Below, piece by piece: positions 2,812-63,923 of a DNA stretch of 64,000 nt. The stretch lies in sequence record LR756508.1; one strand, given 5' to 3'. The translations under genes were made by a program, and so were the position numbers. Below the pieces are notes generated by a model. That model was given only the letters and a program-made list of their open reading frames with translations. It was not told the DNA's origin and searched no databases. Position 1 is the first letter of the stretch, and the number at the start of each line of letters is the position of its first letter.

Positions 2812-4743
2812 ATGGGCAAGACAATTGGAATTGACCTAGGAACTACGAACTCTGTTGTTTCTGTAATGGAAGGCGAGGAACCTGAGGTTATTGAAAATGA
2901 GGAAGGGTCTCGAACTACGCCGTCAGTCGTAGCATACAAAGACGACGGCGAGCGGCTTGTCGGCGACCCCGCTAAGCGACAAGCTATTACAAACCCTGAG
3001 AAGACAGTTTCTTCTATCAAACGCTTCATGGGAAGAGAGTATAATGAAGTGGATGAAGAAAGGGGTGAAGTGTCTTATGAAGTTGTGAAGGATGGCAATG
3101 GAATGGCGCGAGTAGAGGTAGATGGCGAACAGTATGCGCCGCAAGAAATTTCAAGTATGATCCTCCAGAAACTTAAGAAAACCGCCGAAGACCATCTCGG
3201 GCAGGAGGTCACGGATGCCGTAATTACCGTTCCTGCCTACTTTAACGAGGCCCAACGGAAAGCAACCAAAGAAGCAGGAGAAATTGCTGGTCTTAACGTA
3301 GAGCGAATCATAAACGAGCCGACCGCAGCTTCCCTAGCTTATGGTCTTGACGATAAGTCTGATCAAGTGGTTGCTGTATACGACTTAGGTGGTGGAACCT
3401 TTGACGTGTCAATCCTTGAGTTGGGCGACGACGTTTACGAGGTTCTCGCTACCTATGGCGATACTCAACTCGGGGGTGACAACTTTGATCAAGAGCTTAT
3501 TAATCACATGGCCGACGAGTTTGAAGCTAAGCACGGAATTGATCTTCAAGACGATCCTATGGCCCTGCAGCGGCTCCGAGAAGCCGCAGAGCAAGCAAAG
3601 ATCGAGCTTTCCAGCACCAAAACGACGAACGTCAATCTTCCATTTATCACGGCTACCGACAATGGTCCCGTTCATTTGGACATTGATATCACGAGAGCGG
3701 AGTTCGAAAATATGATCGGTGGCCTCGTAGAGGAGACCATTCCTCAGATGGAGAAAGCCATGAACGACGCCGAAGTTTCAAACTCCGACATTGATGAAGT
3801 AATTTTTGTTGGAGGCTCAACTAGAGTGCCTCTCGTTCAAGAGAAAGTTGAAGACTTTTTTGGGCAACAGGCAAATAAGTCCGTAAACCCTGATGAAGTT
3901 GTTTCTCTTGGAGCTGCTATTCAAGGAGGAGTTCTTTCTGGAGACGTTGATGACGTTCTTCTTTTGGATGTTACTCCTCTCGATCTTGGAATCGAAACTA
4001 TGGGTGGCGTGAAGACGACGCTTATTCCTGCCAACACTACTATTCCAACGCAGGAGACAGAAACATTTACTACCGCCGCAGATAACCAGCAGTCGGTGGA
4101 AGTTCACGTCCTGCAAGGAGATCGTGAAATGGCGAGAGACAACCGGACGTTAAGTAAGTTTCACCTGACTGGCATTCCTCCTGCTCCCCGAGGTACTCCG
4201 AAGATTGAGGTTTCGTTTGATATCGATGCCGATGGCATTCTCTCGGTAACGGCTGAAGACCAGGAGACTGGCAAAGAGCACTCAATTGAAGTCGAGGCTT
4301 CTAGTGGCTTGTCTGAAGATGAAATTGAAAAAATGAGGGAGGAAGCCGAGAAGCACGCCGAGGAAGACGAACGTCGAAAAGAGCGTGCCGATACGATCAA
4401 CGAAGCAACCTCACTTAGTTACAGCATTGGACAGGGACTTGATGAGTGGGGCGATCAAATCTCCGATGAAAAGAGGGAAGAAATCGAGTCTCTTAGAGAG
4501 GAGTTGGATGAAGCCCTTGAAACTGCCTCTGCAGATGAAGATATAAGTGAGGTCGAAAACACGATGGAAGACTTGCAGGAGGTCTACAAGTCCGTCGGTC
4601 AAGAAATCTATGGCCAGCAAGCCGCTGGTCAGCAGAGAGCTGCAGGGCCTCAAGCTGAAGCTGCTGGCCAAAGTGCCCAACAAGCAGGTCAAGAAGTAGA
4701 TGATGAAGACGTGACCGACGCCGACTATGAGGTAGTCGATTAA
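2812..4743 (+). CDS. dnaK: Hsp70 chaperone DnaK
   Basis: [37 protein letters not shown] motifs; full length. Confidence 0.98.
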
Positions 4744-9081: not shown

Positions 9082-10167
9082 TTAATGGTTAGGGTTTAAA
9101 GGTTTTACATCTTTATGCTTCTCTATTCTTTCAAGTTTAATAGATCCCACAGTTTTTCTATCGCAATTAAATTTAGATCCAATCTCAGATTGACTTAAAT
9201 CTGTATTTTTTACGTACCATTTTATCTTTCTGACTTCCTCTTTACTTAGTAAACGTGTTTTTTTAAGGTCTGGAATTTCGTCTGGTTTAGAAGCATCTAC
9301 TTTTTTATGAATTTTGTCATCTCTAATTTCTCTCACAGTTTCATGACAGATATTAAACTCTTTTCCGATAGATTTTGAAGTAAATTTCGTATTTTGAGAA
9401 AGCCATTTAATTTTTGATACTTCTTTTTTTAAAAGGAAGTTGGTTTGTTTTTTACCTTCAGGAACATCATCGGGTTTTTTAGGTCTTAATTCTTTGTATT
9501 TTGAAGGATTTGAACTTATTTCTGAAACTGGACTTACTGAGAAATCATATTGAGCTGCAATTTTTTTCTGAGGAAGTTTTCTGTTATTTAAAAGCCATTT
9601 CACCTCAGATTTTTCACGTTTTGTAACGTGATAATCAGATTTTTTGATATCAGGAATATTATCTGGCTTTTCAGCTTCAATATGTGACCAGTTTCTCTCG
9701 GTTTTGATACAACTCAAAGTTTGTTCTGATACATTATAGTAGTCAGCTATTTTAGACTGATCAAAGCTTTTGTTTTGAATAAGCCATTTGATACATTTAA
9801 CTTCATCGTTCGTTAACTTACTGTGAGACCATTCATCTCCTTTTTTATCACAACCACCATGACAACTCTGGCTTAGATTGGATAAGTTCTCGAATATTTC
9901 GAGGTCTTGTAGGATAAATTCTTCTGCTTCTTTTGCGTCTTCAAGGGTTAGCTTATCCCATATTTTCCTTGGATACACCTTCCAGTCATTTCTCTGGCAT
10001 TTTTTAATAATATTGGTCTTGTGCGGATTACGTGTATTTTCGAGACTATATTTCGTAAAGTGTTTTCTCATCCTCCGGTCACTTCCTCTTCCAATATAAA
10101 AAACTTGTGGAATATGGTTGTTAGATGGTTTCTCGTGAAACAGTCCGTATATGTAACAGTCTGACAT
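9082..10167 (-). CDS. GIY-YIG homing endonuclease with four tandem HTH repeats
   Basis: YIYGL..FYIGRG..R..H N-terminus; four ~58-aa repeats (EV..IKW...N...Q..I...F.....V..I..KPD). Confidence 0.75.
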   Translation of the reverse strand: MSDCYIYGLFHEKPSNNHIPQVFYIGRGSDRRMRKHFTKYSLENTRNPHKTNIIKKCQRNDWKVYPRKIWDKLTLEDAKEAEEFILQDLEIFENLSNLSQSCHGGCDKKGDEWSHSKLTNDEVKCIKWLIQNKSFDQSKIADYYNVSEQTLSCIKTERNWSHIEAEKPDNIPDIKKSDYHVTKREKSEVKWLLNNRKLPQKKIAAQYDFSVSPVSEISSNPSKYKELRPKKPDDVPEGKKQTNFLLKKEVSKIKWLSQNTKFTSKSIGKEFNICHETVREIRDDKIHKKVDASKPDEIPDLKKTRLLSKEEVRKIKWYVKNTDLSQSEIGSKFNCDRKTVGSIKLERIEKHKDVKPLNPNH

Positions 10168-14156: not shown

Positions 14157-14227
14157 TGCTTGGTAGCTCATTCTGGTTGAGCGTCGGCTCCTAAAGCCGA
14201 AGGTAGGTTCAATCCCTAACCGAGCAT
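14157..14227 (+). tRNA. tRNA with CTA anticodon (amber suppressor candidate; alternatively aberrant Arg-CCT)
   Basis: Acceptor TGCTTGG/CCGAGCA, D arm GCTC/GAGC, anticodon stem TCGGC/GCCGA around TCCTAAA, T arm GTAGG-TTCAATC-CCTAA; 2-nt variable region. Confidence 0.6.
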
Positions 14228-14232
14228 CATAA

Positions 14233-14324
14233 AAGCTGCGTACAGCAACCATTACCCTGGTTTCGTTGGTTCGAATCCAACCCAAAAAGAGCGGTGAAGC
14301 AAAACACCTAAAAAGCCGCAGCTT
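14233..14324 (+). ncRNA. clamp cassette A (degenerate permuted tRNA-like)
   Basis: AAGCTGCG/CGCAGCTT stem, TACAGCAA, T arm GTTGG-TTCGAAT-CCAAC placed before a GGTG/CACC hairpin. Confidence 0.7.
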
Positions 14325-14530
14325 GATATTCATTTCTTTTAAATCATTTCTCAAAAAAAATGAAAATGCCTGCAGGTCCAAGTCCTAAAGAGGTCAAATA
14401 TTCCAAAAAGGCTAATAAATATCTATGTGAAGAAAAAGAAAGCAATTTAAACTCTGAACCTCTCAACTTTGTAGACCTGCAGCTCTTCACTGAACAATTG
14501 GAGATTTTGAACAAAAAATATAAATAGCTC

Positions 14531-16969: not shown

Positions 16970-17023
16970 AGGCTGCTAACAGCAATGTATTGGATTCCTC
17001 TGTAAAAGGAAAAAATGCAGTCT
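16970..17023 (+). ncRNA. clamp cassette B (isolated Tyr-GTA anticodon stem-loop)
   Basis: AGGCTGC/GCAGTCT stem, TAACAGCAA, TTCCT-CTGTAAA-AGGAA. Confidence 0.75.
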
Positions 17024-17093
17024 GATGATCTTTCAGGTTATATTACTTTTTCTTAAGAATATTTCTATTTGTTTTTAAATATTGTAAGACTGA

Positions 17094-17209
17094 AAGCTAC
17101 CTGCAGCAATTCTCTTACCTCCTCGTAAAGGGAGAGGTTATGGGTTCGAGTCCCATCGCGCTGGCTTTTGGCGCGTAGCTCAATTGGTAGAGCGCTAACT
17201 GAGTAGCTT
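17094..17209 (+). ncRNA. clamp cassette C (circularly permuted tRNA, anticodon GTA or CGT)
   Basis: AAGCTAC/GTAGCTT stem; order is anticodon arm, T arm ATGGG-TTCGAGT-CCCAT, acceptor 3' CGCGCTG, linker, acceptor 5' TGGCGCG, D arm GCTC-AATTGGTA-GAGC. Confidence 0.85.
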
Positions 17210-17229
17210 GATGAGGTCTTTTATTTTTA

Positions 17230-17339
17230 AGGCTGCTAACAGCAGAACTTCTTATTATGGAAGCAGAAACACGTAGGTTCAAATCCTACCACTAGTGTGT
17301 GGCCGAGTCTGGTTAAGCATCTGCATAAAAATGCAGCCT
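17230..17339 (+). ncRNA. clamp cassette D (tRNA-Pro-like, opened at anticodon loop, 3-bp acceptor)
   Basis: AGGCTGC/GCAGCCT stem; TGGAA-GCAGA, T arm GTAGG-TTCAAAT-CCTAC, CAC-TAGT-GTG, D arm, then TCTGC which pairs with GCAGA. Confidence 0.8.
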
Positions 17340-17348
17340 GATATATTG

Positions 17349-17432
17349 TGGGTGAAGGAGTGGGACGACCCGCTCGATGACGTTTTCTACTGAGTTTTCT
17401 CGGGAGGACGTCATTCCGTAAGGATAAGCTCA
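17349..17432 (+). ncRNA. candidate four-way-junction structured RNA
   Basis: GAGTGGG/CCCGCTC, ATGACGT/ACGTCAT, TCC-GTAA-GGA, closing TGGGT/GCTCA. Confidence 0.4.
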
Positions 17433-17437
17433 TGAAA

Positions 17438-17512
17438 GCGGCAGTAGTTCAGTTTGATCAGAACACCGCGATGCCACTGCGGAAGTCGTGAGTTTAAATC
17501 TCGCCTGCCGCT
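17438..17512 (+). tRNA. tRNA-Gly(GCC), atypical D and T loops
   Basis: GCGGCAG/CTGCCGC acceptor, CCGCG-ATGCCAC-TGCGG, T loop TTTAAAT. Confidence 0.8.
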
Positions 17513-17684
17513 CTTTTCTTACCTATTAAAGACAAAACAACATGAAATTAAAGTTTAACATTCGTAAGCCAAATTTGAGAGGCACTGACGAGCCAAGAAA
17601 AATCGACAGGAAAAATGTAGTTGCTGCCGAGTCTTCTTCGGCTTGTAGTAGAAAGAAAAAGAAAAAAGAAGATTCAAAACAAAA

Positions 17685-17759
17685 GCGTCGGTAGTTCAAT
17701 TTGTAGAACATCTGATCTTTCCGATCAGAAGGTTGGAGGTTCAAATCCTCCCCGTCGCT
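17685..17759 (+). tRNA. Arg-type tRNA body with a 9-nt anticodon loop (identity undetermined)
   Basis: GCGTCGG/CCGTCGC, TCTGA-TCTTTCCGA-TCAGA, GGAGG-TTCAAAT-CCTCC. Confidence 0.6.
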
Positions 17760-17851
17760 CATTTGAATAGTTTTTGTAGCTGTTTATCAATAGTATTAAA
17801 AATAAGTTTTTTTGATATGGAAATTGATGTAAGGTAAAGGAAGATGGTTCC

Positions 17852-18259
17852 GTGGAGGCTAAGTCATCCTTCAAGCAACTTCTTAGTAGAGAGAAAAACA
17901 AGAGCCTGCTATCTGCAGGTTTGAGTCAAAACGAGCTTCCGTTCCATTGGAAAATGGTTGAACTTCCAAGTTTTCTTTATGATGGTGAGCCATACACGGC
18001 TAGAGCAACAAGAATTGATGTTAATGGAAGTCTTCTTGACGATTTCTTTAATGTCCTAAAAAAAGAGGTAGCCGAGGAAGATCTTAATAAGGAAGTTAGA
18101 GGTGTCTATAGAAGCGTCTTGGATAGCGTGTGGGATGAAGTGACTGATAATCTTTCTGAGATGCACAGCGAAGATGAAATGATTGGCTTCTACGAATTTG
18201 ATCTGGCTGACGTGGATGGACAAAAGATTCTACTTCTGCGGTATGCCGTGATCGATTAA
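17852..18259 (+). CDS. hypothetical protein
   Basis: 135-aa ORF. Confidence 0.65.
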   Translation: MEAKSSFKQLLSREKNKSLLSAGLSQNELPFHWKMVELPSFLYDGEPYTARATRIDVNGSLLDDFFNVLKKEVAEEDLNKEVRGVYRSVLDSVWDEVTDNLSEMHSEDEMIGFYEFDLADVDGQKILLLRYAVID

Positions 18260-18320
18260 ATTTTTCTTCATGGAACAGTATGTATATTCACACATTGAGT
18301 TAGAGTGACTTTGATGGGTA

Positions 18321-18380
18321 AAACTGCTAACAGCAACGCTGATTTTTTACCTTATCATTCACCAGGTAAAAAAGCAGTTT
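18321..18380 (+). ncRNA. clamp cassette E (single 10-bp hairpin)
   Basis: AAACTGC/GCAGTTT stem, TAACAGCAA, TTTTTTACCT-TATCATTCACC-AGGTAAAAAA. Confidence 0.75.
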
Positions 18381-18415
18381 GATGATCCCAATTTTTTTTA
18401 AACAAGTTTAACCTT

Positions 18416-18495
18416 GGAGATATGATCTAGTCTAGTCTAGGATGCGAGTTTGTCAAACTCGATGTCCCGAGTGCAAATCTCGGTGTCTCCGCCAT
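18416..18495 (+). tRNA. tRNA-Asp(GTC), encoded CCA
   Basis: GGAGATA/TGTCTCC, CGAGT-TTGTCAA-ACTCG, T loop TGCAAAT, ends GCCA. Confidence 0.8.
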
Positions 18496-18760
18496 ATTAT
18501 GCACTTTGATAAACTTCGGACTTGGCATGCGAGCGTGCTTAAACCGAGGCACGAGAGGCTTCCGTAGAAGCCTTAGTAGGTTTCCAGTAACCCAAAACGT
18601 AGAGCCCTTTTTGTTAGTATTGTCTTAGAGAGGCAAGCGGCAATGAGAGGAATTCCCATACTGGAATCCTCCGACTGCGTTCCGAAAGGCAGGCCCTCTC
18701 GAAGGAGTGGGCGTACCAGAGCCTCCAGGCAAGAAAGTCAAAAAGGGAAAACTGGAATAA

Positions 18761-18832
18761 GAGGCAGTAGTTTAGCTGGCAAAACGTTTGGATGCCATCC
18801 AGAAGTCGCTGGATCATTTCCAGCCTGCTGCT
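18761..18832 (+). tRNA. tRNA-Gly(GCC), second degenerate copy
   Basis: GAGGCAG/CTGCTGC, TTTGG-ATGCCAT-CCAGA, T loop ATCATTT. Confidence 0.6.
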
Positions 18833-19101
18833 CTTTTGATGAAGTAACAAAGTTTCTGCATTTTATGGCCTCTCCTCAAAATATACAAGAAGTATTTAAT
18901 GCTTCCAGCAAAATAGACAAGCAGCTTGAGGGCATACGGCCTTGTCGATCACACGCGATTCCACGGGGGGTTTCAGAGTCGGACCAGTTAGCGAACGATC
19001 AAGAAGAAAAATGCAAGTCGAAAAGTTCTGGAATGCATGCTGTCCTACGTAAGAGGCGGGAAGTTCCTGCAAAACTTCAAACAGTCGGGAAGTTTTAATA
19101 T

Positions 19102-19198: not shown

Positions 19199-19316
19199 AG
19201 GCTGCTCACAGCAAATCCTATATATTTTTTCCACATAAGGAAGAGATATGGGTTCGAGTCCCATCGGGCTGGAGTTTGGCGCGTAGCTTAACTGGTAAAG
19301 CTCTAATATGCAGCCT
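19199..19316 (+). ncRNA. clamp cassette F (circularly permuted tRNA, anticodon CAT)
   Basis: AGGCTGC/GCAGCCT stem; TTTTC-CACATAA-GGAAG, ATGGG-TTCGAGT-CCCAT, CGGGCTG-GAGTT-TGGCGCG, D arm GCTT-AACTGGTA-AAGC. Confidence 0.85.
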
Positions 19317-19322
19317 GTTTCT

Positions 19323-20557: not shown

Positions 20558-21355
20558 GTGAGATTTAAAGATCTGTTATTTGAGTATTCCGACGAAGAAC
20601 TTGAGAATTTGGATAAGGTTGTTCAAGAAGGCAACTGGCTTTATAATTTTGATCGTCCCATCTATAGGGCAAGTAAAGTTCAAGAAGAAAACTTCAAAGT
20701 TAAAGAAACTACAGAAAGAGGGGGGACGCGAGATACAATTTTTTATGTTGATGAGCTGATCCATCTTTTTTATGAGCAATGTTTTTCAAACCTTCCTGAT
20801 CGGAGACACAGCCGTTTCGGCTCGGTGTTCAGAGACAATATAGAGACTTATTTAGACCCTACACAAAGCATGGAGAAAGAGTCTTATGTTGTTCTCCCAC
20901 ATGCTTCTGCTAAAATAAGCTCACGAATTGAAGATCCTTTTACAGTTTTAGACGAAATAAAAAGATTCGCGGATCGTATTTTCAAGTATCCCTTAGATGA
21001 AAACTTCAACGATCTAATGGGCTACATAAAAGAAAGATCACAGTACATCTATAAGTTCGTTAAATTTCTTGGCGATTTGAAAAATCAAAAGACACCTGAC
21101 GTATCGATAAATGAGCTCGGTTGTCCCGAAAAACTCGAAAGTAAGATAAAACGTGAGGTAAAAGCTCTTGAGAATGATAAACTCGAAAATTATATATTAA
21201 ATACTGCTCAGAATATCTACCTGTACTTTGACGATATCGAATCTGGATACCCAAAAAGCTCAAAACAGGGAGGTGAAGTGATGTGGGATGGAAAATATCT
21301 TCAAATCAAAGAAGACTTCTACGAACATTACGTCTATCATAAAACAGGTAAATGA
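20558..21355 (+). CDS. hypothetical protein
   Basis: 265-aa ORF. Confidence 0.7.
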   Translation: MRFKDLLFEYSDEELENLDKVVQEGNWLYNFDRPIYRASKVQEENFKVKETTERGGTRDTIFYVDELIHLFYEQCFSNLPDRRHSRFGSVFRDNIETYLDPTQSMEKESYVVLPHASAKISSRIEDPFTVLDEIKRFADRIFKYPLDENFNDLMGYIKERSQYIYKFVKFLGDLKNQKTPDVSINELGCPEKLESKIKREVKALENDKLENYILNTAQNIYLYFDDIESGYPKSSKQGGEVMWDGKYLQIKEDFYEHYVYHKTGK

Positions 21356-34859: not shown

Positions 34860-36833
34860 ATGAGTGAAGAATCCGATTCAGTAGTAGAAAATTTCGGTAG
34901 AAATCTTACTGAATTAGCTAAGAAGGGCGAACTTGATCCGGTTATTGGTCGAGAACAAGAGATCAAGAGAGTCTCGCAGGTTCTGGTTCGTAGGAAGAAG
35001 AATAATCCCGTCCTTATTGGGAGTCCTGGCGTTGGAAAGTCGGCAATAATCGAGGGTCTTGCAAAAAAAATTGTCCAAAGAGATACAAATCGCTCCCTTT
35101 TTGATGTTGAAATTGTAGAGTTAAATTTGACATCCCTTGTAGCAGGAACAAGATACCGAGGGCAGTTTGAAGACCGAATGAGAGCAGTTATCGATGAGCT
35201 TGAAAATGAAGAGGACAAGCTTCTTTTCATCGATGAACTTCATACGATTATGGGAACAGGCCAGGCGAGAGGTGGACTGGATGCGTCCAACATGTTAAAA
35301 CCTGCGCTCGCGGACGGAAGGCTTCAATGCATCGGTGCAACAACCTTGGAAGAATATCGGAATATTGAAGATAATGGTGCCCTAGAGAGGAGGTTTCAAA
35401 AGGTAGTTGTTGATCCATCCAGCGAGGAGGAAACTAAAAACATCTTACGAAATATTCGGCAATACTACGAAGACTTCCACAATGTAAAGTATAGCGATGA
35501 AATTATTGACCGAGCCGTCCAGCTTGCTGCAAGATATATTACAAACAGGTATTTTCCCGATAAGGCGGTCGATATCATCGATGAGGTAGGCTCTCGTGTA
35601 AATATTGAAAACATCGAGCCTCCTGAAAAACTTATTGAGATTGAAGAAAAATATGATGAACTTGAAGAAGAAAAACAGGAGGCCGTGTCTGAGCAGGAGT
35701 TTGAAGCTGCTGCTGACCTGCGAGATAAACAGGAGCAGCTTGAAAATCTCTATGAACAAGAAAAAGAAAACTGGAAAGAGGTAAGAAATGAAAACTACTA
35801 CGACGTAAAGGAAGATGATATTGCAGAAGTGGTTTCTATGATTACCGATATTCCAAAAGAAAAGATTTCTGCAGACACGAAAGATAAGGTTCTCGGGCTC
35901 GACAAGAGAATGAAAGAACGTGTAGTTGGACAGGATCGAGCTATCGAGACCGTGACAAGTGCCATGAAAAGAGCCACGAGCGGTATTAAAGACCCTGATC
36001 GCCCGATTGGCACTTTTCTTTTTCTGGGTCCCACCGGGGTGGGGAAAACTCTGAGCGCTAAAGTTCTTACCGAAGAGATCTTTGAATCTCAAAAGAATCT
36101 TGTTCGGATTGACATGAGTGAGTACCAGGAAAAGTTTGAATCTACAAAACTCATGGGATCTCCTCCTGGTTACGTTGGGCACGAAGAGGGTGGCGATCTT
36201 ACCGAAAAGGTTCGTAGAAATCCGTACTCGGTCGTTCTACTTGATGAAATTGAGAAAGCCCACCCTGATATTTTTAATACCCTCCTGCAAATCATGGACG
36301 ATGGGATCATGACCGATGGAATGGGCCGAGAAGTTGACTTTACGAACACAATCCTCATCATGACCTCTAATGTTGGAAGTGAAGAGCTTGTATCAAGCGG
36401 TTCGGACATCGGGTTTAGTCCAGGAGATTCAGGTGACCCACTTTCTTATGAAACTATCAAGACAAAAGTTGAAGACAAGCTCGGTGACACATTTAAACCT
36501 GAGTTCCTGAATAGGTTAGATGACGTTGTAATCTTCAATGCTCTTAAAAAAGATCACATTAGAGAGATCATTGACATCGAGCTTGAAGACCTTCGAGATC
36601 GCCTAGATCTCCAAGAGATTACTTTGAACATCACTGATGGAGCTAAAGACGTATTGATTGAAAAAGGATATGACATGGAGTATGGAGCTAGGCCCCTCAA
36701 AAGGACGCTCCGAAAGCAAATTGAAGAGCCACTTTCTGATATGATTATCTCTGAAGATGTCGATGAAGGGGACGAAGTTCGAGTTAGAAAGAGAAGAAAC
36801 GAAATGGAAGTTGAAATTGATGTCAATCCTTGA
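34860..36833 (+). CDS. ClpC/ClpE-type Hsp100 ATPase lacking the N-domain
   Basis: Two AAA+ modules (GSPGVGKS; GPTGVGKT), UVR-like QEFEAAADLRD, GSPPGYVG, YGARPL. Confidence 0.9.
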   Translation: MSEESDSVVENFGRNLTELAKKGELDPVIGREQEIKRVSQVLVRRKKNNPVLIGSPGVGKSAIIEGLAKKIVQRDTNRSLFDVEIVELNLTSLVAGTRYRGQFEDRMRAVIDELENEEDKLLFIDELHTIMGTGQARGGLDASNMLKPALADGRLQCIGATTLEEYRNIEDNGALERRFQKVVVDPSSEEETKNILRNIRQYYEDFHNVKYSDEIIDRAVQLAARYITNRYFPDKAVDIIDEVGSRVNIENIEPPEKLIEIEEKYDELEEEKQEAVSEQEFEAAADLRDKQEQLENLYEQEKENWKEVRNENYYDVKEDDIAEVVSMITDIPKEKISADTKDKVLGLDKRMKERVVGQDRAIETVTSAMKRATSGIKDPDRPIGTFLFLGPTGVGKTLSAKVLTEEIFESQKNLVRIDMSEYQEKFESTKLMGSPPGYVGHEEGGDLTEKVRRNPYSVVLLDEIEKAHPDIFNTLLQIMDDGIMTDGMGREVDFTNTILIMTSNVGSEELVSSGSDIGFSPGDSGDPLSYETIKTKVEDKLGDTFKPEFLNRLDDVVIFNALKKDHIREIIDIELEDLRDRLDLQEITLNITDGAKDVLIEKGYDMEYGARPLKRTLRKQIEEPLSDMIISEDVDEGDEVRVRKRRNEMEVEIDVNP

Positions 36834-37477: not shown

Positions 37478-38488
37478 ATGAAAGAATCGATTAACAAGGA
37501 GAAGAGTGCCATCACCATCACCGAAGAAGCAGAGGAGGCCGGAGAGTCTGTTCATCTCCCTGAAAACTTGAGTCAAATTCGCAGGTTTATTCGAAACGAG
37601 GCTCCTGACCTTCTTCCCGATGGCTTGAAGATGAAAGAGTCGAAGTGGAAGACGTTGATTCGTTCCATTCTTCGGGGGAAGAACATCTTGTTTACAGGGC
37701 ACTCTGGCTGCGGGAAAACCATCGCTGCCATGTCTGCAGTTCGCGCCTTGAAGCGAAAGTTTTTTTACTTTAACCTTGGCGCAACCCAGCGACCGCGAAC
37801 AAGCCTGATCGGAACTCGCGAAGTTGAAGATGGATCGACATACTTTTCTCCTTCCGTTTTCGTGGAAGCCATTCAAACTGAAGGGGCAGTAATCCTTCTC
37901 GATGAGCTTTCACGGGCGCACCCTGAAGCTATTAACATTCTCCTTACTCCTCTCGATCCGAAGCAGCGCTACCTGCGACTTGACGAGTCCGACGAGGAGG
38001 ATACTGTAAAGGTTCACGATAGCGTTTCCTTTGTCGGAACTGCCAACATTGGAAACGAGTATACTGCGGCACGGCGGATCGACAGGGCCATGTGGGATCG
38101 GTTCACGGTTATTGAAATGGATCTTCTCGGGCGAGAAGAAGAAAAAGATCTTATCCTGGAAACCTACCCCGAGTTGAAAGAAGAAACAGCCGCCAAGCTC
38201 GCTCGGATTGCGGAGCAAACGCGAGATCAAGCTCAAAGTAGCAGTCCCGAGGTTGAAACAATTATTTCTACTCGACAAAACCTGGAAGCCGCTGAAATGA
38301 TTCGGGACGGATTGTCGCTTGAAGAATCCGCTGAGGTAGCTTACTACCCAAACTACGATAAGGAAGGTGGAGTCGATTCTCCCCGAAACTACGTGAAGAA
38401 AGTTGTGCAGCGGGAAATTGATGATGAAAGCGACGATGAGCTATTCTCAAGTCGAGACATCGAGGAAGCTCCGCGCCGCAATAATTAA
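37478..38488 (+). CDS. MoxR-family (CbbQ/NirQ-like) AAA+ ATPase
   Basis: GHSGCGKT, ILLDELSRA, TANIG, AMWDRF. Confidence 0.88.
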   Translation: MKESINKEKSAITITEEAEEAGESVHLPENLSQIRRFIRNEAPDLLPDGLKMKESKWKTLIRSILRGKNILFTGHSGCGKTIAAMSAVRALKRKFFYFNLGATQRPRTSLIGTREVEDGSTYFSPSVFVEAIQTEGAVILLDELSRAHPEAINILLTPLDPKQRYLRLDESDEEDTVKVHDSVSFVGTANIGNEYTAARRIDRAMWDRFTVIEMDLLGREEEKDLILETYPELKEETAAKLARIAEQTRDQAQSSSPEVETIISTRQNLEAAEMIRDGLSLEESAEVAYYPNYDKEGGVDSPRNYVKKVVQREIDDESDDELFSSRDIEEAPRRNN

Positions 38489-38508: not shown

Positions 38509-40407
38509 ATGAAGCCTACCACTAAAAAATCCCAAAACTACTCCGATTGGTGGCTCGATGACATTACCAAGCGGAGCGTCAGAAAAGCCAGAAATGGCAA
38601 GAGTCAGTCGGAAAAAGACCTTGCCGCGCTTGCTTCCGTCAAGAGGTCCATAGCACAGTTTGTCCACATTCTTACGGGAAAGAGGCTGCGCGTGAAGTTC
38701 AAGGAAGAAGGCAAGGAGTCTTTCACCGACGGCGAGACCGTGGTTGTTTCTTCGGACATCGGTCCAGAGACTTACGATCAAACTGTCGGAATTGCCCTCC
38801 ACGAGGGCTCTCACATTGTGAAAACGGACTTCTACATCTTCAAAAACATTGAAGATTATATTCCAAGTCACATCGAAGACTTGGCTGACAAGAAGTTCGG
38901 AGAAACTGAGTTTTTGGAGCAAGTTCTCCATAAAATTCTAAATTACGTAGAAGACAGGCGGATCGATAATTGGGTGTTTTCTACCTCGCCTGGATACAAA
39001 GGCTACTACCATTCGATGTATGAAGCTCATTGGCACAACGAGAAGATTACCGAGCGCCTCAAGTCCGACGACTTTCGCGATGAGACGATGCAGTCCTATA
39101 TGTTTCGCCTCATTAACCTCACGAACGATGCAGGCGATCTGGATGCGTTGAACGGGCTCCGCGAGATCCATGATAGAATTGATCTCGATAACATCGCTCG
39201 TCTCCAAAGCACCGAAGATGTGTTGGAAGTCTCTCAAGACATCTTGGAGATTATTATCGAGAACGTCAATGACATTGAGTTCGAGGAAGGGGGCGACGTG
39301 AAGTTTGTTCCTGGCGAAGGCGATGGAGATGGCGATCCCATCGATTGGGACGAGCTTTCTGAAGAAGAAAAAGAAGCTCTTAAAGATGCCATTGAAGACC
39401 AGATGGACTTTTTGGATGGTAACATTGATAAAGAGCCAATTGATCCTGAAGACGCTGAAGAGCTTGAAGCTTTGGAAGACGCTGGCGTCTCTACGCACGA
39501 GGTGGGTGAGGGAACCGGCAATCCTCATGGCATTGATTGTGTAGTTATCGATAAGCTTACCGAGAGGCTTGTTAACAAGAGCAAGTTCCCGATCCTAAAA
39601 ACCTATGAGGTCGATAGGTCCAAAGAAGCCGTAAATCAAGGCGTTGTTCTTGGAAGGAAGCTCGGCAAAAAGCTCAAAGTTCGAGACACAAAACGAAATA
39701 CGAAATTTTCCCGCAGAAAAAGTGGACGATTGGATCAAGCTCTTCTCTCGGAGGTAGGCCACACCGAGCGCCTTTTCTATGAGGAAATTATTGATGAGTA
39801 CGATGACGCATTCGTTCATATAAGCGTGGACGCAAGTGGCTCGATGTCAAATGACAAGTGGAGCGAAGCCATGAAAACGTGCGTGGCCGTAGCTAAGGCT
39901 TGCTCTATGATTGGAAACGTTCGGGTCCAGATTTCTTTTCGGTCAACAACGAGCGCTGGATTTTCTTCGGGGGAAACCAAGCCTCTTATTTTGATGGCTT
40001 ACGATTCCGATGAAAGTTCGTTTAATCACGTCAAGAAGTACTTTCCGAACATTAATTCTGGAGGCACGACTCCTGCTGGCCTTACATTTGAGGCCATTCA
40101 AGAGAAAATTCTTCTTGTGAAAGACGACGAAGATGGGTATTTCGTAAACCTGTCTGATGGTAGGCCAAACTTTAGCGCAGATGATTTCCAATACGGATCT
40201 GAAAACGGGGCTGCTCACACTAGAAAACAGGTCCGGAAAATCAAAAAGAAAGGAATTGAAGTCGTCGCTTACTTCATTTCGTCAGGAAGTAGCAGCGTTG
40301 ACTCCGCATTTAGCAGGATGTATGGCCCTGACGACTACTACATCGATCCATCAAATATCACCCAAGTCTCGAAAACTCTAAACAAAAAGTTCCTTAAAGA
40401 AAAGTGA
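38509..40407 (+). CDS. VWA-domain protein with N-terminal HExxH domain (MoxR partner)
   Basis: ALHEGSH, NYVEDRRI, VDASGSM MIDAS, GGTTP, LSDG. Confidence 0.85.
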   Translation: MKPTTKKSQNYSDWWLDDITKRSVRKARNGKSQSEKDLAALASVKRSIAQFVHILTGKRLRVKFKEEGKESFTDGETVVVSSDIGPETYDQTVGIALHEGSHIVKTDFYIFKNIEDYIPSHIEDLADKKFGETEFLEQVLHKILNYVEDRRIDNWVFSTSPGYKGYYHSMYEAHWHNEKITERLKSDDFRDETMQSYMFRLINLTNDAGDLDALNGLREIHDRIDLDNIARLQSTEDVLEVSQDILEIIIENVNDIEFEEGGDVKFVPGEGDGDGDPIDWDELSEEEKEALKDAIEDQMDFLDGNIDKEPIDPEDAEELEALEDAGVSTHEVGEGTGNPHGIDCVVIDKLTERLVNKSKFPILKTYEVDRSKEAVNQGVVLGRKLGKKLKVRDTKRNTKFSRRKSGRLDQALLSEVGHTERLFYEEIIDEYDDAFVHISVDASGSMSNDKWSEAMKTCVAVAKACSMIGNVRVQISFRSTTSAGFSSGETKPLILMAYDSDESSFNHVKKYFPNINSGGTTPAGLTFEAIQEKILLVKDDEDGYFVNLSDGRPNFSADDFQYGSENGAAHTRKQVRKIKKKGIEVVAYFISSGSSSVDSAFSRMYGPDDYYIDPSNITQVSKTLNKKFLKEK

Positions 40408-53236: not shown

Positions 53237-54460
53237 ATGTACACAAAAACGTTTACAGAGGTTGCAAAAGAAAATGGTTTTGGTGACATTAATGAAACTG
53301 AAGACGAGAAGTTTTCTACTGTAAAAGATTATGTAGTAAATGTTTATAAGACCCATGAGGAAGTTGGCTTTGTGGACAACCTGGACCATCCACATACATC
53401 TGATATTTCTGATGTCAACCACTCGACATATTTAAAGGAAGAGGCAGTTCAAGATGTGACTGTCTGCTATACGCTCTGGCAAAATCCTCTCTACGTCAAA
53501 CTTCTTTATCTTTCTTTTTTATCTCAGATTCTATACAGTGACATTTTGAATGTCAAAAAATTTGTGATCGTTACTGATTACAAACTTGAACCACTCGTTT
53601 GGGATGTCTTTCGTCCATTTGCACAGGATCATTCAGGAAACTTCGAGTTAGAAGTGAAAGCAGTTGACAGGCAAAGAGTGGTCTGGTCTGATGTTGCTCC
53701 AAACGTAAGAATGCCTGTAAGATTGAATAAATATGTCGTTTCCACGTTTGATGACTTAAGAAAAACTGATCTACTTGTTTTATCTGACTGCGAAAGCTTT
53801 ATCTTTGGAGAAAAAAGTCAGATTTATAGTCAACTACATTCGCAGTATTCGGAATCAGATAATTTTCCAGTTCTCGGCTGCGAAGAAAATCACAACAGCT
53901 CTTCCGTCTTCCTGCAGCGGCGAGAAGATCTGGCTAATATGATGCACGACAATGAAGAGTATGTCAACTGGTGTGCAAAAAGATTGGAGGTATCTAAAGA
54001 TAATTTTGTAGATAAAGTAGTAAAAAGAAACAATTGGTTTTTAACCTGCTGGTTCGTATTTGATAATGAAAAATATAAGCTCAATGATTCTCACTGGCAA
54101 GATTACGTTGAATGGTCAAACCTTTACTCGATGTACTGCGACGAGTCCATTTATTTAACTTATGGATGGTGCGCAGAAGATTACACAGTTAAAGACGTTA
54201 AAGTTATTAACGGGTTAGAATTTATTCATTCTCCTTACTGCGAGTCTTTTTTTGAACAAGACGAGTATGATAAAACAGGAATTGTCCATCCGCTGCACGG
54301 AAAATGGGCTGAAGATTTCTGGGTTCATGATTTCTATGACTCGATTCAAGATGGATTCGAGGCGGAGTTGAAACAAGCTATGAGTGAAAAAGTAAGCTTA
54401 AGGGAGTTACTGCCTCAATATAAAGATAGCTACTATACTGAGCCAATTCAAAACGAATGA
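53237..54460 (+). CDS. GT-A-like protein (family with 49844 and 55451)
   Basis: KLLYLSFLSQILYSDI, LSDCE, CDE, HP. Confidence 0.5.
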   Translation: MYTKTFTEVAKENGFGDINETEDEKFSTVKDYVVNVYKTHEEVGFVDNLDHPHTSDISDVNHSTYLKEEAVQDVTVCYTLWQNPLYVKLLYLSFLSQILYSDILNVKKFVIVTDYKLEPLVWDVFRPFAQDHSGNFELEVKAVDRQRVVWSDVAPNVRMPVRLNKYVVSTFDDLRKTDLLVLSDCESFIFGEKSQIYSQLHSQYSESDNFPVLGCEENHNSSSVFLQRREDLANMMHDNEEYVNWCAKRLEVSKDNFVDKVVKRNNWFLTCWFVFDNEKYKLNDSHWQDYVEWSNLYSMYCDESIYLTYGWCAEDYTVKDVKVINGLEFIHSPYCESFFEQDEYDKTGIVHPLHGKWAEDFWVHDFYDSIQDGFEAELKQAMSEKVSLRELLPQYKDSYYTEPIQNE

Positions 54461-55449
54461 TCACTCTTGCCAACGAGTTTTCTCGCGCTATCGATAAAAT
54501 GCGAGATACACCTCAACCTAAACAATATCATCCCGAGGTTTGGGTGTGGAATCACGAATCTCTCGTTTTTTATAGCATTCTAAACAATACTTCTCACCTC
54601 TCTAATACTCAACAAAAAGAACTCTTGTGGACCGCTCTTTTCCACGATCTGGGGAAAATTGATAAAACCTGGTATAGAGAAAAGAAGGAACGTTACGTCT
54701 CTTACGGTCACGAAAAAGCCGCACTTCCTTATTATGATGCCACAAAAGAAGCACTTGTTGATAAAGACCTTCGACCTGAGGTAATCCGTTTTCTTATAAG
54801 ACAGCATATGAAGCCGAAATTTATAGATAGGATGAATGAAGGCACGGTCGAAAAGTTAAAAAAAGAAGCGAACAATATTAGTGAAGACGTTTGGAATCTC
54901 CTCATGGAATTTGCCGAACACGACGATGCCTCCAAGCTTTACAAGAATTCTGACAAAACCGATAGATACGAAGCTCAATGGCTTTTTCATAACTTCTGTG
55001 AAAAAGCCATAGAAAAAATCAATTTAACTTATTCTAACGAAAAGGACAGTTTCACTGGTGAACTGTTTATTCTGAGAGGTGCATCTGGATCCGGAAAATC
55101 AACGGTTGCTCAGCTTCTTGAAAATAATGGAGCCTATCAAATTTCTGCTGATCAGTTTTTCATAAGAGAGGACGGTAAGTATCGTTATGACGGGAGCAAA
55201 ATTTCAGAAGCTCACGACTATTCCAAACGTAGAACTGAAGATGGAATGGTTGCTGAGAGAGAAACCATTGCCGTTCATAACACCTTTACCGAAGACTGGC
55301 AGATGATCTATTATTTTTATCTGGCAGCAAAGTATAACTACAGGGTTCATACCTTACTGGTTGAAAACAGGCATGAAAGCGATACTATACATAATGTTCC
55401 CGAAAACAAAATTGAAGATCAGAGGGAAGAAATGGAACTGAAACTTTAG
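54457..55449 (+). CDS. HD-domain phosphoesterase fused to a polynucleotide kinase (HD-Pnk-like)
   Basis: YHPE..H, LFHDLGK, GHE, HM; LRGASGSGKS, SADQF, VHNTF. Confidence 0.82.
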   Translation: MITLANEFSRAIDKMRDTPQPKQYHPEVWVWNHESLVFYSILNNTSHLSNTQQKELLWTALFHDLGKIDKTWYREKKERYVSYGHEKAALPYYDATKEALVDKDLRPEVIRFLIRQHMKPKFIDRMNEGTVEKLKKEANNISEDVWNLLMEFAEHDDASKLYKNSDKTDRYEAQWLFHNFCEKAIEKINLTYSNEKDSFTGELFILRGASGSGKSTVAQLLENNGAYQISADQFFIREDGKYRYDGSKISEAHDYSKRRTEDGMVAERETIAVHNTFTEDWQMIYYFYLAAKYNYRVHTLLVENRHESDTIHNVPENKIEDQREEMELKL

Positions 55450-62619: not shown

Positions 62620-63923
62620 ACCGAGTGATATATAAACCCTCTCTCATGATTCTGCACTGCAGAACCTTATAGAGGTACGACTGTTACTGACACTATCATG
62701 ACACACGAGATCAAGCGCACATATCAGTATCGGATTTATCCGAACGAGGGGCAGAGGCAAGAACTCGCTCGCACGTTCGGATGTAGCCGATGGGTGTATA
62801 ACTGGGCGCTTGAGACCAAAACGAAGGCGTACTACCAGGATGAAAAGTCGCTTTCGTTCACCGATCTCAGCAGCCGTCTCACTTCCAAGAAGAAAGAAGA
62901 GGAGACGGAGTGGCTTTCGGAGGTCAGTGCGGTCACGCTCCAACAGAGCCTTCGTAACCTGAATCAAGCGTTCATTAACTTCTTTGAGGGGCGGGCCGAG
63001 TATCCGTCCTTCAAATCGAAGAAGGGCGATCAGACAGCTCGATACGTCGGAAGCTCCTTCGACACCCGAAAGGAAAATGGAAAACGGAAGCTCTGGCTCT
63101 CGAAGATGCCAGGACTGGTTAATATTCGATGGTCGAGGGAGCTTCCTTCCGAGCCGAGTAGCTGCACCGTCACGAAAAACGCGGCGGGGCAGTACCACGT
63201 CTGCTTCGTCTGCAGCGAAGAGATCCAGACTCTCCCGAGAGTCAACGGAGAGGATGGCGATCTTCGGTTTGTGGGCGTAGACCTCGGCATAGAGAGCCTT
63301 TTGACGCTTTCGACTGGCGAGAAAGTCGGGAATCCGCGCTGGTTCGAAAACAAATATGATCGGCTTCGCAGAGAGCAACAGAAGCTCTCTCGAAAAGAGA
63401 AAGGATCGAACAACTGGGTGCGGCAGAAAAAACGTGTAGCGAAAGTCCACCAGCGCATTCAGGATCGGCGCAAAGACTTCATCGAGAAGCTGACCACACG
63501 ACTTGTCGAAAGCTGGGATGTGATCGTCGTTGAGGACCTTTCGGTGAAGGCGATGCAGCAGAACGAGAGTCTTGCTCGTCACATGGGACAAGCAGGATGG
63601 GGACAGATTGTCCGTCGCCTTAGAGACAAGTGCAGGTGGTACGGTCGCACGCTTGTGATCGCCGACAAGTGGTTCCCTTCCAGCCAGCGCTGTTCTGAAT
63701 GTGGAAATGTCGATGACAAGAAGCCGCTTGACGTTCGAGATTGGACGTGTCCTGAATGTGGAGAACATCACGACAGAGACATCAATGCAGCGAGGAATCT
63801 CAGTAGGGTCGGGCAGATCCGACTTCAAGCACCTGGAGACCTGGGTAAACCCGACGCGTTTGAGGTCGTCGGTTCCGGTCGATGAATGGTAGAATCCCTT
63901 GGATTTATCCTGGGGAGTGTCAA
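62620..63923 (+). mobile_element. IS200/IS605-family (IS1341-like) element, TnpB only
   Basis: Right-end hairpin TCCCTTGG-ATTTAT-CCTGGGGA, then GTGTCAA ending at 63923; left end uncertain (hairpin TTCTGC/GCAGAA at 62650-62664). Confidence 0.8.
62698..63885 (+). CDS. tnpB: TnpB RNA-guided endonuclease
   Basis: YRIYPN HTH, GVDLG, VEDL, CSECG..CPECG, DRDINAARN; RuvC D-E-D intact. Confidence 0.95.
   Translation: MTHEIKRTYQYRIYPNEGQRQELARTFGCSRWVYNWALETKTKAYYQDEKSLSFTDLSSRLTSKKKEEETEWLSEVSAVTLQQSLRNLNQAFINFFEGRAEYPSFKSKKGDQTARYVGSSFDTRKENGKRKLWLSKMPGLVNIRWSRELPSEPSSCTVTKNAAGQYHVCFVCSEEIQTLPRVNGEDGDLRFVGVDLGIESLLTLSTGEKVGNPRWFENKYDRLRREQQKLSRKEKGSNNWVRQKKRVAKVHQRIQDRRKDFIEKLTTRLVESWDVIVVEDLSVKAMQQNESLARHMGQAGWGQIVRRLRDKCRWYGRTLVIADKWFPSSQRCSECGNVDDKKPLDVRDWTCPECGEHHDRDINAARNLSRVGQIRLQAPGDLGKPDAFEVVGSGR

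Follow-up and report, generated by a model that had tools for sequence, protein, structure and literature searches.

Two described classes of small RNA come closest to the elements considered here. In Y RNAs, the terminal stem carries the conserved nucleotides on its 5' strand, several paralogs occur per genome, one class is tRNA-like and another hairpin-like, the genes lie beside the protein gene, and the heads tether partners such as PNPase (PMC4201824, PMC12135203). The motif bound by bacterial Rsr is GNCGAAN0-1G, and the earlier survey for Y RNAs was confined to TROVE-annotated genomes (PMC4201824). The Class I RNAs of dictyostelids, as described by Kjellin et al., are about 60 nucleotides (nt) long, start with AAG and end with CUGU, and have an invariant G, a structural stem of 6 base pairs (bp) and a middle that varies; their 11-nt motif, CCUUACAGCAA, sits next to the 5' strand, with U3, C6, C9, A10 and A11 invariant (PMC7919456). 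We analyzed two short elements, cassettes B and E, in a tRNA array of LR756508.1, an unannotated "uncultured phage" genome of 484,177 bp. The window, to which coordinates refer unless the genome or another locus is named, is the last 64 kb of that record (420178-484177). Cassettes B and E belong to an undescribed family of phage small RNAs that looks like a new Ro60/Y-RNA branch, and we consider it probable that these RNAs are Y-RNA-like, their constant handle docking on a Ro60-like partner protein.

The handle of cassettes B and E

B and E appear to be genes for small structured RNAs, some 55-60 nt long, each composed of a constant handle and a variable head. They follow one plan, in which a 6-bp closing stem (P1) encloses a motif, adjoining its 5' strand, and a single hairpin, with UG next to its 3' strand on the outside. 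The parts are as follows.

16971-17024, + strand: cassette B, short handle and head RNA, 54 nt from P1 to the UG tail
16971-16976 and 17017-17022: P1 of B, 5' strand GGCTGC and 3' strand GCAGTC, with one G-U pair
16977-16985: motif of B, TAACAGCAA (in RNA, UAACAGCAA)
16995-16999, 17000-17006 and 17007-17011: head hairpin of B, TTCCT, loop CTGTAAA and AGGAA, 5 bp with a 7-nt loop
17023-17024: tail TG of B, within TGATGA at 17023-17028
RNA layout of B: GGCUGC, UAACAGCAA, ugu auu gga, UUCCU-CUGUAAA-AGGAA, aaaau, GCAGUC, UG
18322-18381, + strand: cassette E, short handle and head RNA, 60 nt from P1 to the UG tail
18322-18327 and 18374-18379: P1 of E, 5' strand AACTGC and 3' strand GCAGTT, with an A:U closing pair
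18328-18336: motif of E, TAACAGCAA (in RNA, UAACAGCAA)
18343-18352, 18353-18363 and 18364-18373: head hairpin of E, 10 bp, TTTTTTACCT, 11-nt loop TATCATTCACC and AGGTAAAAAA
18380-18381: tail UG of E, within TGATGA at 18380-18385
RNA layout of E: AACUGC, UAACAGCAA, cgcuga, UUUUUUACCU-UAUCAUUCACC-AGGUAAAAAA, GCAGUU, UG

Unconstrained RNA folding recovers both structures exactly, with a minimum free energy (MFE) for E of -16.6 kcal/mol (z -3.8). An original prediction, made from the letters of the window, had described B as a tyrosine anticodon stem-loop and E as a 10-bp hairpin with an 11-nt loop; both descriptions can be read directly in the sequence, and folding reproduces the hairpin of E. 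A CAT triplet that it had pointed to inside the loop of E deserves no weight. Neither ARAGORN nor the Rfam tRNA model calls a tRNA at B or E, and no cloverleaf is present at either.

Related loci were gathered by pattern scans of IMG/VR and of JGI/ENA metagenomes, after which their neighborhoods were scanned for any P1. Dozens more cassettes occur in other large-phage contigs, usually within tRNA arrays or tandem arrays, co-oriented with every tRNA of the arrays that contain them. In phage-type loci, taking the 5' half alone (A-G-N5-N3-CAGCAA) and excluding the seed-type P1, 30 of 36 independent 5' motifs are followed by a perfect 6-bp partner and then UG within 15-230 nt; with shuffled downstream sequence, 0.97% are. 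There are 31 different P1 sequences among 64 cassettes, for which the sequence logo reads U-W-A-A, G-R-N-U-N-N, Y-W-A, CAGCAA ... N5-C, U-G-U/A-U. The G1:C pair of P1 is near-invariant, and P1 is otherwise conserved as structure rather than sequence. The tail UG is the most frequent even where it was not required (64/120). Compensatory changes in P1 are found inside the window itself (GGCUGC/GCAGCC, GGCUGC/GCAGUC, AGCUAC/GUAGCU, AACUGC/GCAGUU), and the G-U pair in the P1 of B, together with the strand bias, indicates that the structure exists at the level of RNA rather than DNA. The handle consists of a 6-bp stem joining the ends, an N-N-A-CAGCAA, predicted to be single-stranded, right after the 5' strand, and UG(U/A) after the 3' strand. 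Short cassettes with this same handle, showing compensatory stem changes, are present in many unrelated large phages, which bears out the earlier proposal that the scaffold is maintained without a tRNA body. The accompanying claim of a conserved downstream GATGA is true of B, C and E but fails as a family feature: GAUGA after the tail is local to the LR756508.1 phage, and family-wide only UG and then U or A is conserved.

Cassettes also stand in tandem, some 13 nt apart, six of them in locus L132 and five in L287; the L132 array lies behind a sigma-70-like promoter, TTGCAA-N-TAATAT, read by eye. Variants of the handle were also seen. In L288 (~9905-9975) and L290 (~9925-9985), the final cassette before the DUF2828 gene described below has the core UUCCGCAA, not NNACAGCAA; L132 has variants with a CAGCGA core and a CG tail; the tail is UGG in phage REP8, and AG, with the 5' flank UGU, in phage Faith1. 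These variants would therefore be lineage-specific dialects of the handle. The exact 14-mer GCTGCTAACAGCAA occurs at no fewer than 119 loci in viral contigs; among the matches listed, one (L020) passed the 3'-partner filter, and another locus, L057, later proved to be cassette-bearing too. AAGGCTGCTNACAGCAA was tried as a family probe and rejected, its matches being mostly coding sequence of KAADSK type.

A DUF2828 protein gene beside the cassettes

Clustering of open reading frames (ORFs) from cassette-bearing loci, an approach that starts from the RNA, brought out one recurrent protein of about 470 residues, present at eight loci. In L132 its gene immediately follows the array of six cassettes, and in L144 and L227 it adjoins cassettes; the protein's Pfam domains are DUF2828 (PF11443) and DUF7788 (PF25043). 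Starting instead from family proteins encoded on long contigs, look-ups found handle elements by the gene in six cases out of six. Arrangements at these loci and in cultured phages are listed here.

L287: five cassettes upstream of the DUF2828 gene
L285: one cassette about 1.4 kb downstream of the DUF2828 gene and one in a tRNA array
L288, L289 and L290: cassettes abutting the DUF2828 gene
L286, ~9945-9985: head-less mini-cassette (P1 plus UNACAGCAA) in the 5' leader of the gene, with what reads as a consensus-like TTGACA/TAATAT promoter upstream
Listeria phage A511: gp57 with three cassettes immediately upstream
E. coli phage REP8 (Felixounavirus): four cassettes in the tRNA array right after the gene
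Mycobacteriophage Faith1: three cassettes right after gp55
Vibrio phage KVP40: a single long cassette within its tRNA region, the DUF2828 gene lying about 3 kb further downstream
KVP40 (L291 3918-3959): handle-like fold, P1 plus UNACAGCAA, tail AG rather than UG, enclosing the ribosome-binding site and ATG of KVP40.0300

The leader elements of KVP40 and L286 fit recognition of the handle by the protein, and they suggest that the DUF2828 gene may be autoregulated through that same recognition.

More than 7000 sequence clusters make up the DUF2828 family, phage-like metagenomic contigs being the main source, and some members also match Pfam vWA_Ro60. Among cultured phages, 709 genomes encode the protein, those of Felix O1-like, KVP40-like and A511-like phages included, and GenBank labels it "RNA-binding protein", "Ro-like RNA binding protein", "vWFA protein" or hypothetical, and the family is also present in plant genomes. 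A literature search found no paper on DUF2828 function. The AlphaFold2 model built from an input of 32 sequences (predicted local distance difference test, pLDDT, 87.5; predicted template-modeling score, pTM, 0.88) has a Ro60 fold: its only full-length matches in PDB are Ro60 (9nep_A, E value 6.3e-9, template-modeling score 0.61; likewise 9nf8 and 9nfa) and 9l5y_A, which is Ro60 from Thermus phage phiLo (E value 9.3e-7), all others being limited to the vWA domain. No PDB sequence was matched by phmmer.

Because the gene for a protein with this predicted fold adjoins them, the cassettes are read as Y-RNA-like. On this reading, a Ro60-like ring protein encoded by the phage (DUF2828 plus DUF7788) would dock at the handle, with the conserved nucleotides of the 5' strand taking the role that GGUCCGA or GNCGAA has in classical Y RNAs. 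The head is an exchangeable module, either a partial copy of a tRNA or a plain hairpin. The heads of cassettes C and F are tRNA-like bodies of YrlA type, that of B is a copy, with 5 bp and 7 nt, of the tRNA-Tyr anticodon arm, and E has a generic hairpin of 10 bp that resembles the hairpin-type Y RNAs YrlB and Yrn2. The RNAs are probably excised from the transcript of the tRNA array. By analogy with Ro60/Y-RNA particles, the head may tether or occupy a second factor while the handle keeps the RNA on the ring; for the head of B, that factor could be an anticodon-binding enzyme or nuclease. Physical binding, the RNA ends and the factor that a head recruits or blocks are inferred, whereas the anatomy, the covariation, the gene linkage, the Ro60 fold of the protein and the anticodon-loop identity of B-type heads are direct results.

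Several observations weigh against this interpretation. The DUF2828 homolog of LR756508.1 itself (genome 85208-86759; L123 36208-37759; tblastn E value 1.7e-53), which sits between an HD-domain gene and a CCA-adding-enzyme-like gene (L123 35557-36120 and 38173-39288), is split in the assembly into two overlapping ORFs of 156 and 365 residues in different frames; the split may reflect a frameshift, a fault of the assembly or decay to a pseudogene. On the linear record it lies about 350 kb from cassettes A-F, although 14 kb from cassette G. A tblastn search of the genome with a true Ro60, that of phage Phabba, found no TROVE-type Ro60. When the family profile was compared by hhalign with one true Ro60 sequence, the vWA part alone was aligned, so the Ro60 relationship rests on the predicted fold. 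The cassette motif, NNACAGCAA, is neither the GNCGAAN0-1G of bacterial Y RNAs nor the GGUCCGA of those of animals. The sample of homologs is biased to P1 = GGCUGC through the search patterns used. Finally, B by itself, unlike E, is thermodynamically unremarkable (MFE -12.5 kcal/mol, z -1.3); significance derives from the evidence of the family. The scaffold, which the original prediction held to be intact in both, is so in B; in E, P1 closes with an A:U pair rather than the near-invariant G:C, and CAGC of the motif can pair with GCUG just 3' of it, which would partly sequester the motif.

Sibling cassettes, variable heads and rival explanations

A regular-expression scan of the whole 484-kb genome gave seven cassettes, A-G, whose likeness to one another extends well beyond what the expression demands; the same scan of the shuffled genome gave two to seven noise matches, unrelated. 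Every cassette of the window shares its strand with the tRNA genes of the 14-22 kb array. Besides B and E, the cassettes and the ordinary tRNA genes among them are these.

14234-14325, + strand: cassette A, P1 AGCTGC/GCAGCT, motif GTACAGCAA, T-arm-like hairpin in the head
17095-17210, + strand: cassette C, P1 AGCTAC/GTAGCT, a compensatory variant, with a permuted tRNA-like head in the order hairpin, T arm, closed acceptor, D arm
17231-17340, + strand: cassette D, starting 20 nt past C, P1 GGCTGC/GCAGCC, core variant CAGCAG, with a T arm and a class-II-like D arm
17438-17513, + strand: tRNA-Gly(GCC), ordinary tRNA gene between cassettes D and E
17685-17760, + strand: tRNA-Glu(UUC), ordinary tRNA gene between cassettes D and E
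19200-19317, + strand: cassette F, P1 GGCTGC/GCAGCC, motif TCACAGCAA, tRNA-like head, abutting tRNA-Cys (19323)
Genome 71210-71264: cassette G, short copy with the loop UUUUUUU

A promoter and terminator scan around the cassettes did no better than on shuffled sequence. With blastn, cassette B matched nothing besides itself, and cassettes C and D together matched only tRNAs and YrlA-like bodies; a search for related phages with the neighboring ORF 20558-21355 as bait found none. Five nucleotides before cassette A ends a tRNA gene with a CUA anticodon (14157-14228; tRNA-Pyl according to ARAGORN), of amber-suppressor type, which hints at TAG recoding in the phage or its host. Two relatively G+C-rich stretches between tRNAs and cassettes, 17345-17437 and 18495-19100, show evident local pairing, match nothing in Rfam and may encode additional structured RNAs; part of this sequence overlaps an ORF of 151 residues (18643-19098). 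Elsewhere in the window, a complete gene of TnpB/IS605 OrfB type (62698-63885, with HTH_OrfB_IS605, OrfB_IS605 and Cas12f1-like TNB domains) stands at the end of the record. Genes for Hsp70/DnaK, a ClpB-type double AAA+ chaperone and a MoxR/CbbQ-type AAA_5 ATPase lie at 2812-4743, 34860-36833 and 37478-38488, the last followed by a 632-residue ORF (38509-40407) with no Pfam match.

Several types recur among the heads of short cassettes: (i) P2, a second helix, followed by a 5-bp stem with a 7-nt loop, the type of B; (ii) AUGGG or AUUGG loops; (iii) long hairpins capped by GNRA-type tetraloops; and (iv) others, including E. Type (i) loops read CUUUUAA (on several different stems), CUGCUAA, CUUCUAA, CUGUAAA (B), AUGUAAA, CUGUCAC, CCUUUAA, CCGUUAA, CCCUUAA and CUCGUAAA. 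In E. coli, the first three are the anticodon loops of tRNA-Lys, tRNA-Ser(GCU) and tRNA-Arg(UCU), CUGUAAA is the canonical tRNA-Tyr(GUA) loop and CUGUCAC is the tRNA-Asp loop, Asp-specific C38 included, so that these B-type loops are identical, letter by letter, to canonical bacterial anticodon loops. Among closely related cassettes, the head stem UUUGA/UCAAA stays constant while the triplet varies, and other head stems differ by compensatory changes (UUAGA/UCUAA, UUCAA/UUGAA, AAAGA/UCUUU, UUUCA/UGAAA, UUCCU/AGGAA), a covariation tabulated by hand since MAFFT misplaced the hairpin of B.

In their MFE folds, 6 of 35 non-redundant short phage cassettes present a stem of at least 4 bp with a 7-nt loop of the form Y-U-NNN-R-N, where dinucleotide shuffles give a mean of 0.095 and a maximum of 1 in 200; loops of 7 nt of any kind number 12 of 35 (1.5 expected). 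Many of the 35 owe their P1, GGCUGC, to the search pattern, and these counts therefore describe related copies, not independent events. The bias toward anticodon-like loops that the original prediction expected of homologous minimal cassettes is thus found for heads of the B type. Its notion of anticodon display is accordingly supported for B, through loop enrichment and identity to a canonical loop, and is not supported for E, whose 11-nt loop has no anticodon-like feature and whose head had no homolog in the other loci. As many heads are tetraloops, AUGGG or AUUGG loops, long hairpins or tRNA-like bodies, the scaffold is a general handle and not a device for anticodon display. With the Rfam YrlA model, RF02553 (gathering score 69 bits), the heads of C and F and of one L132 cassette score 43.8, 27.5 and 32.9 bits, and all three have the permuted order of T arm, closed acceptor and D arm; the model has no match at B or E.

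That same original prediction favored a decoy role, and the strongest rival to a protein-docked handle, though an unlikely one, is that the cassettes are free-standing decoys: the scaffold would serve only to stabilize an anticodon stem-loop competing with tRNAs for anticodon nucleases such as PrrC, RloC, PARIS, or retron-linked or colicin-like enzymes, and there would be no protein partner dedicated to the cassettes. The anticodon loops of Lys-UUU and Tyr-GUA are known nuclease targets, both are among the canonical loops copied by B-type heads, and the single head stem UUUGA/UCAAA bears different triplets. The window also has possible tRNA-repair genes, an Rnl1-type RNA ligase (PF09511, 51725-52876) and an AAA_33 kinase-like protein (54457-55449). 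Most heads, however, are not anticodon-like (E, the UUUUUUU of G, tetraloops, AUGGG loops, tRNA-like bodies), C replaces U33 in CCUUUAA, CCGUUAA and CCCUUAA, and neither the invariant ACAGCAA nor the tight linkage to a Ro60-like gene is explained. Within the preferred reading of a Y-RNA-like particle, display remains supported for B, and action as a decoy is one possible use of a head of its type.

Much less credible is a role as processing punctuation, with stem and motif forming a cleavage signal for RNase P, E or III in the transcript of the tRNA array and the hairpins having no role. Cassettes do lie between tRNAs, abut tRNA 5' ends (as F does tRNA-Cys) and start with G after AA, like RNase P products; yet different phages share conserved heads, whose stems change by compensation and whose loop sequences are kept exactly, tRNA-free arrays of cassettes exist (L132, L287, A511), and the same design occurs within an intron of a marine eukaryote. 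We regard as very improbable a set of trans-acting riboregulators in which the exposed ACAGCAA, invariant and predicted to be single-stranded, is a seed for UUGCUGU targets and linkage to the protein is incidental: no conserved complementary target was identified, one 7-nt seed in all copies would render many paralogs redundant, and recognition by a protein is favored both by the linkage of a Ro60-like gene and by the handle mimics that its leader carries. Least probable of all are decayed remnants of tRNA-like cassettes that lost their bodies, or small mobile or recombination elements with inverted repeats, since, for all that the hairpin of B resembles the first hairpin of cassette C (CCUCUGUAAAAGG versus CCUCGUAAAGGG) and cassette ends are inverted repeats, short forms are conserved in many phages, G-U pairs in P1 (B) would be A-C mismatches on the opposite strand, the strand is always that of the tRNAs, neither target-site duplications nor linkage to a transposase was seen, and in 185,579 reference bacterial and archaeal genomes one (L253) of 37 pattern matches seems genuine.

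Other identities considered were ribozymes (hammerhead or other), retron noncoding RNA, CRISPR-like repeats, integron attC sites, permuted tRNA genes, and C/D-box or k-turn RNA, the last prompted by TGATGA. They were dropped because there is no Rfam support up to an E value of 5, GATGA is not conserved, or short forms occur without a tRNA body.

Comparison with tRNAs, Y RNAs and Class I RNAs

The likeness of B to a tRNA is confined to the anticodon arm, its head having a 5-bp stem and the loop C-U-G-U-A-A-A as in tRNA-Tyr, with relatives that resemble Lys, Ser, Arg and Asp arms. B and E differ from tRNAs in having no acceptor, D or T arm, and they cannot be charged or decode.

For Y RNAs, our comparators were YrlA (RF02553), YrlB, Yrn1/Yrn2, and Yrl1/Yrl2 of Thermus phage phiLo. 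As in Y RNAs and YrlA, the ends of the phage cassettes pair into a stem and the recognition nucleotides lie on its 5' strand, which is the case in B and E. A genome holds several paralogous cassettes, one class with a permuted tRNA-like module and another that is a simple hairpin, and the cassettes lie beside, and on the strand of, the gene for a ring-shaped protein of HEAT repeats and a vWA domain. Frequent placement in phage tRNA arrays is a further likeness, as in Phabba. The differences are that the handle of B, GGCUGC-UAACAGCAA, does not contain the Rsr motif; that the protein is DUF2828/DUF7788 rather than Pfam TROVE; that some heads are bare copies of an anticodon arm; that cassettes stand in tandem arrays of up to six; and that the tRNA-like module of YrlA, present in C and F, is absent from B and E. 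YrlB/Yrn2-type Y RNAs also lack that module (PMC4201824). The tRNA array of Phabba contains an unannotated YrlA-like RNA with GGUCGA (L120 3976-4118), the annotated Ro gene (L121 33006-34670) being some 37 kb away; because it scores only 40.1 bits against YrlA, genuine phage Y RNAs fall under the curated threshold. The cassettes are Y-RNA-like in architecture and context and stand outside RF02553 membership, and their working as Y RNAs is what this likeness suggests. Such a function would give the large, uncharacterized DUF2828 family a role and an RNA partner, add a second, unrecognized branch of Ro60/Y-RNA systems with a different recognition motif, and account for unannotated gaps in phage tRNA arrays. 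Anticodon-arm heads would also make directly testable the idea of a phage RNA-protein particle that engages tRNA-directed enzymes.

Judged from genomic sequence, every feature that Kjellin et al. list for Class I RNAs appears to have a counterpart in the phage handle. The 6-bp terminal stem is conserved in structure only, with a 5' G1:C pair in B and A:U in E; the motif of B and E, GCUAACAGCAA, has all five invariant positions; genomic flanks read AA-G and C-UG-A/U; and the genomic lengths of B (54 nt) and E (60 nt) compare with the roughly 60 nt of Class I RNAs. With the Class I model RF01414, B scores 19.6 bits and four L132 cassettes score 29.1, 18.0, 16.8 and 16.6 bits, all below the gathering score of 41.5. 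A working cut-off for candidate Class I RNAs is 25 bits plus the stem (PMC7919456), which the best L132 cassette exceeds in score. Class I RNAs differ in that the phage motif, read as (G)CUAACAGCAA in B and E, is one nucleotide shorter, and in having their own upstream DUSE promoter, being reported from Dictyostelia only, having the RRM protein Rnp1A/CIBP as known direct binder, and having no described tRNA-like versions.

Cassettes of the same design (aaGGCUGC-UCACAGCAA ... GCAGCC-UGU) were also seen in marine metagenomes, in AT-rich islands within DNA of about 65% GC.

L188 1178-1229 and 1596-1658; L210 (minus strand) ~110-165 and 525-590: marine island cassettes
L175, L184, L186, L201-L203, L205, L207, L213, L215, L217, L225, L230 and L235: further marine island loci

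One of these lies within an intron (GT...AG) of a gene whose product has matches among the marine-eukaryote transcripts of MERC/MMETSP and nowhere else; the design is therefore present in a marine protist as well, which would be a eukaryotic branch of the family beyond Dictyostelia. It is possible, if speculative, that phage cassettes, Class I RNAs and the look-alikes in protist introns form one ancient class, the Y RNAs of DUF2828-type proteins, in which the ring particle of phages would use anticodon-arm and tRNA-like heads to capture or blunt enzymes directed at tRNA, anticodon nucleases of the host among them. The Class I RNAs, thought to be confined to social amoebae, would thereby gain a testable hypothesis for how they act. 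Published pull-downs with the Class I RNA DdR-21 returned Rnp1A/CIBP, GuaB, NdkC and the uncharacterized DDB_G0281243, which, were a single ancient class real, would become the first candidate for the dictyostelid partner. Set beside known particles of Ro60/Y-RNA type, what is new in the phage system is the handle, a partner family that had been uncharacterized, and heads that are bare anticodon arms.

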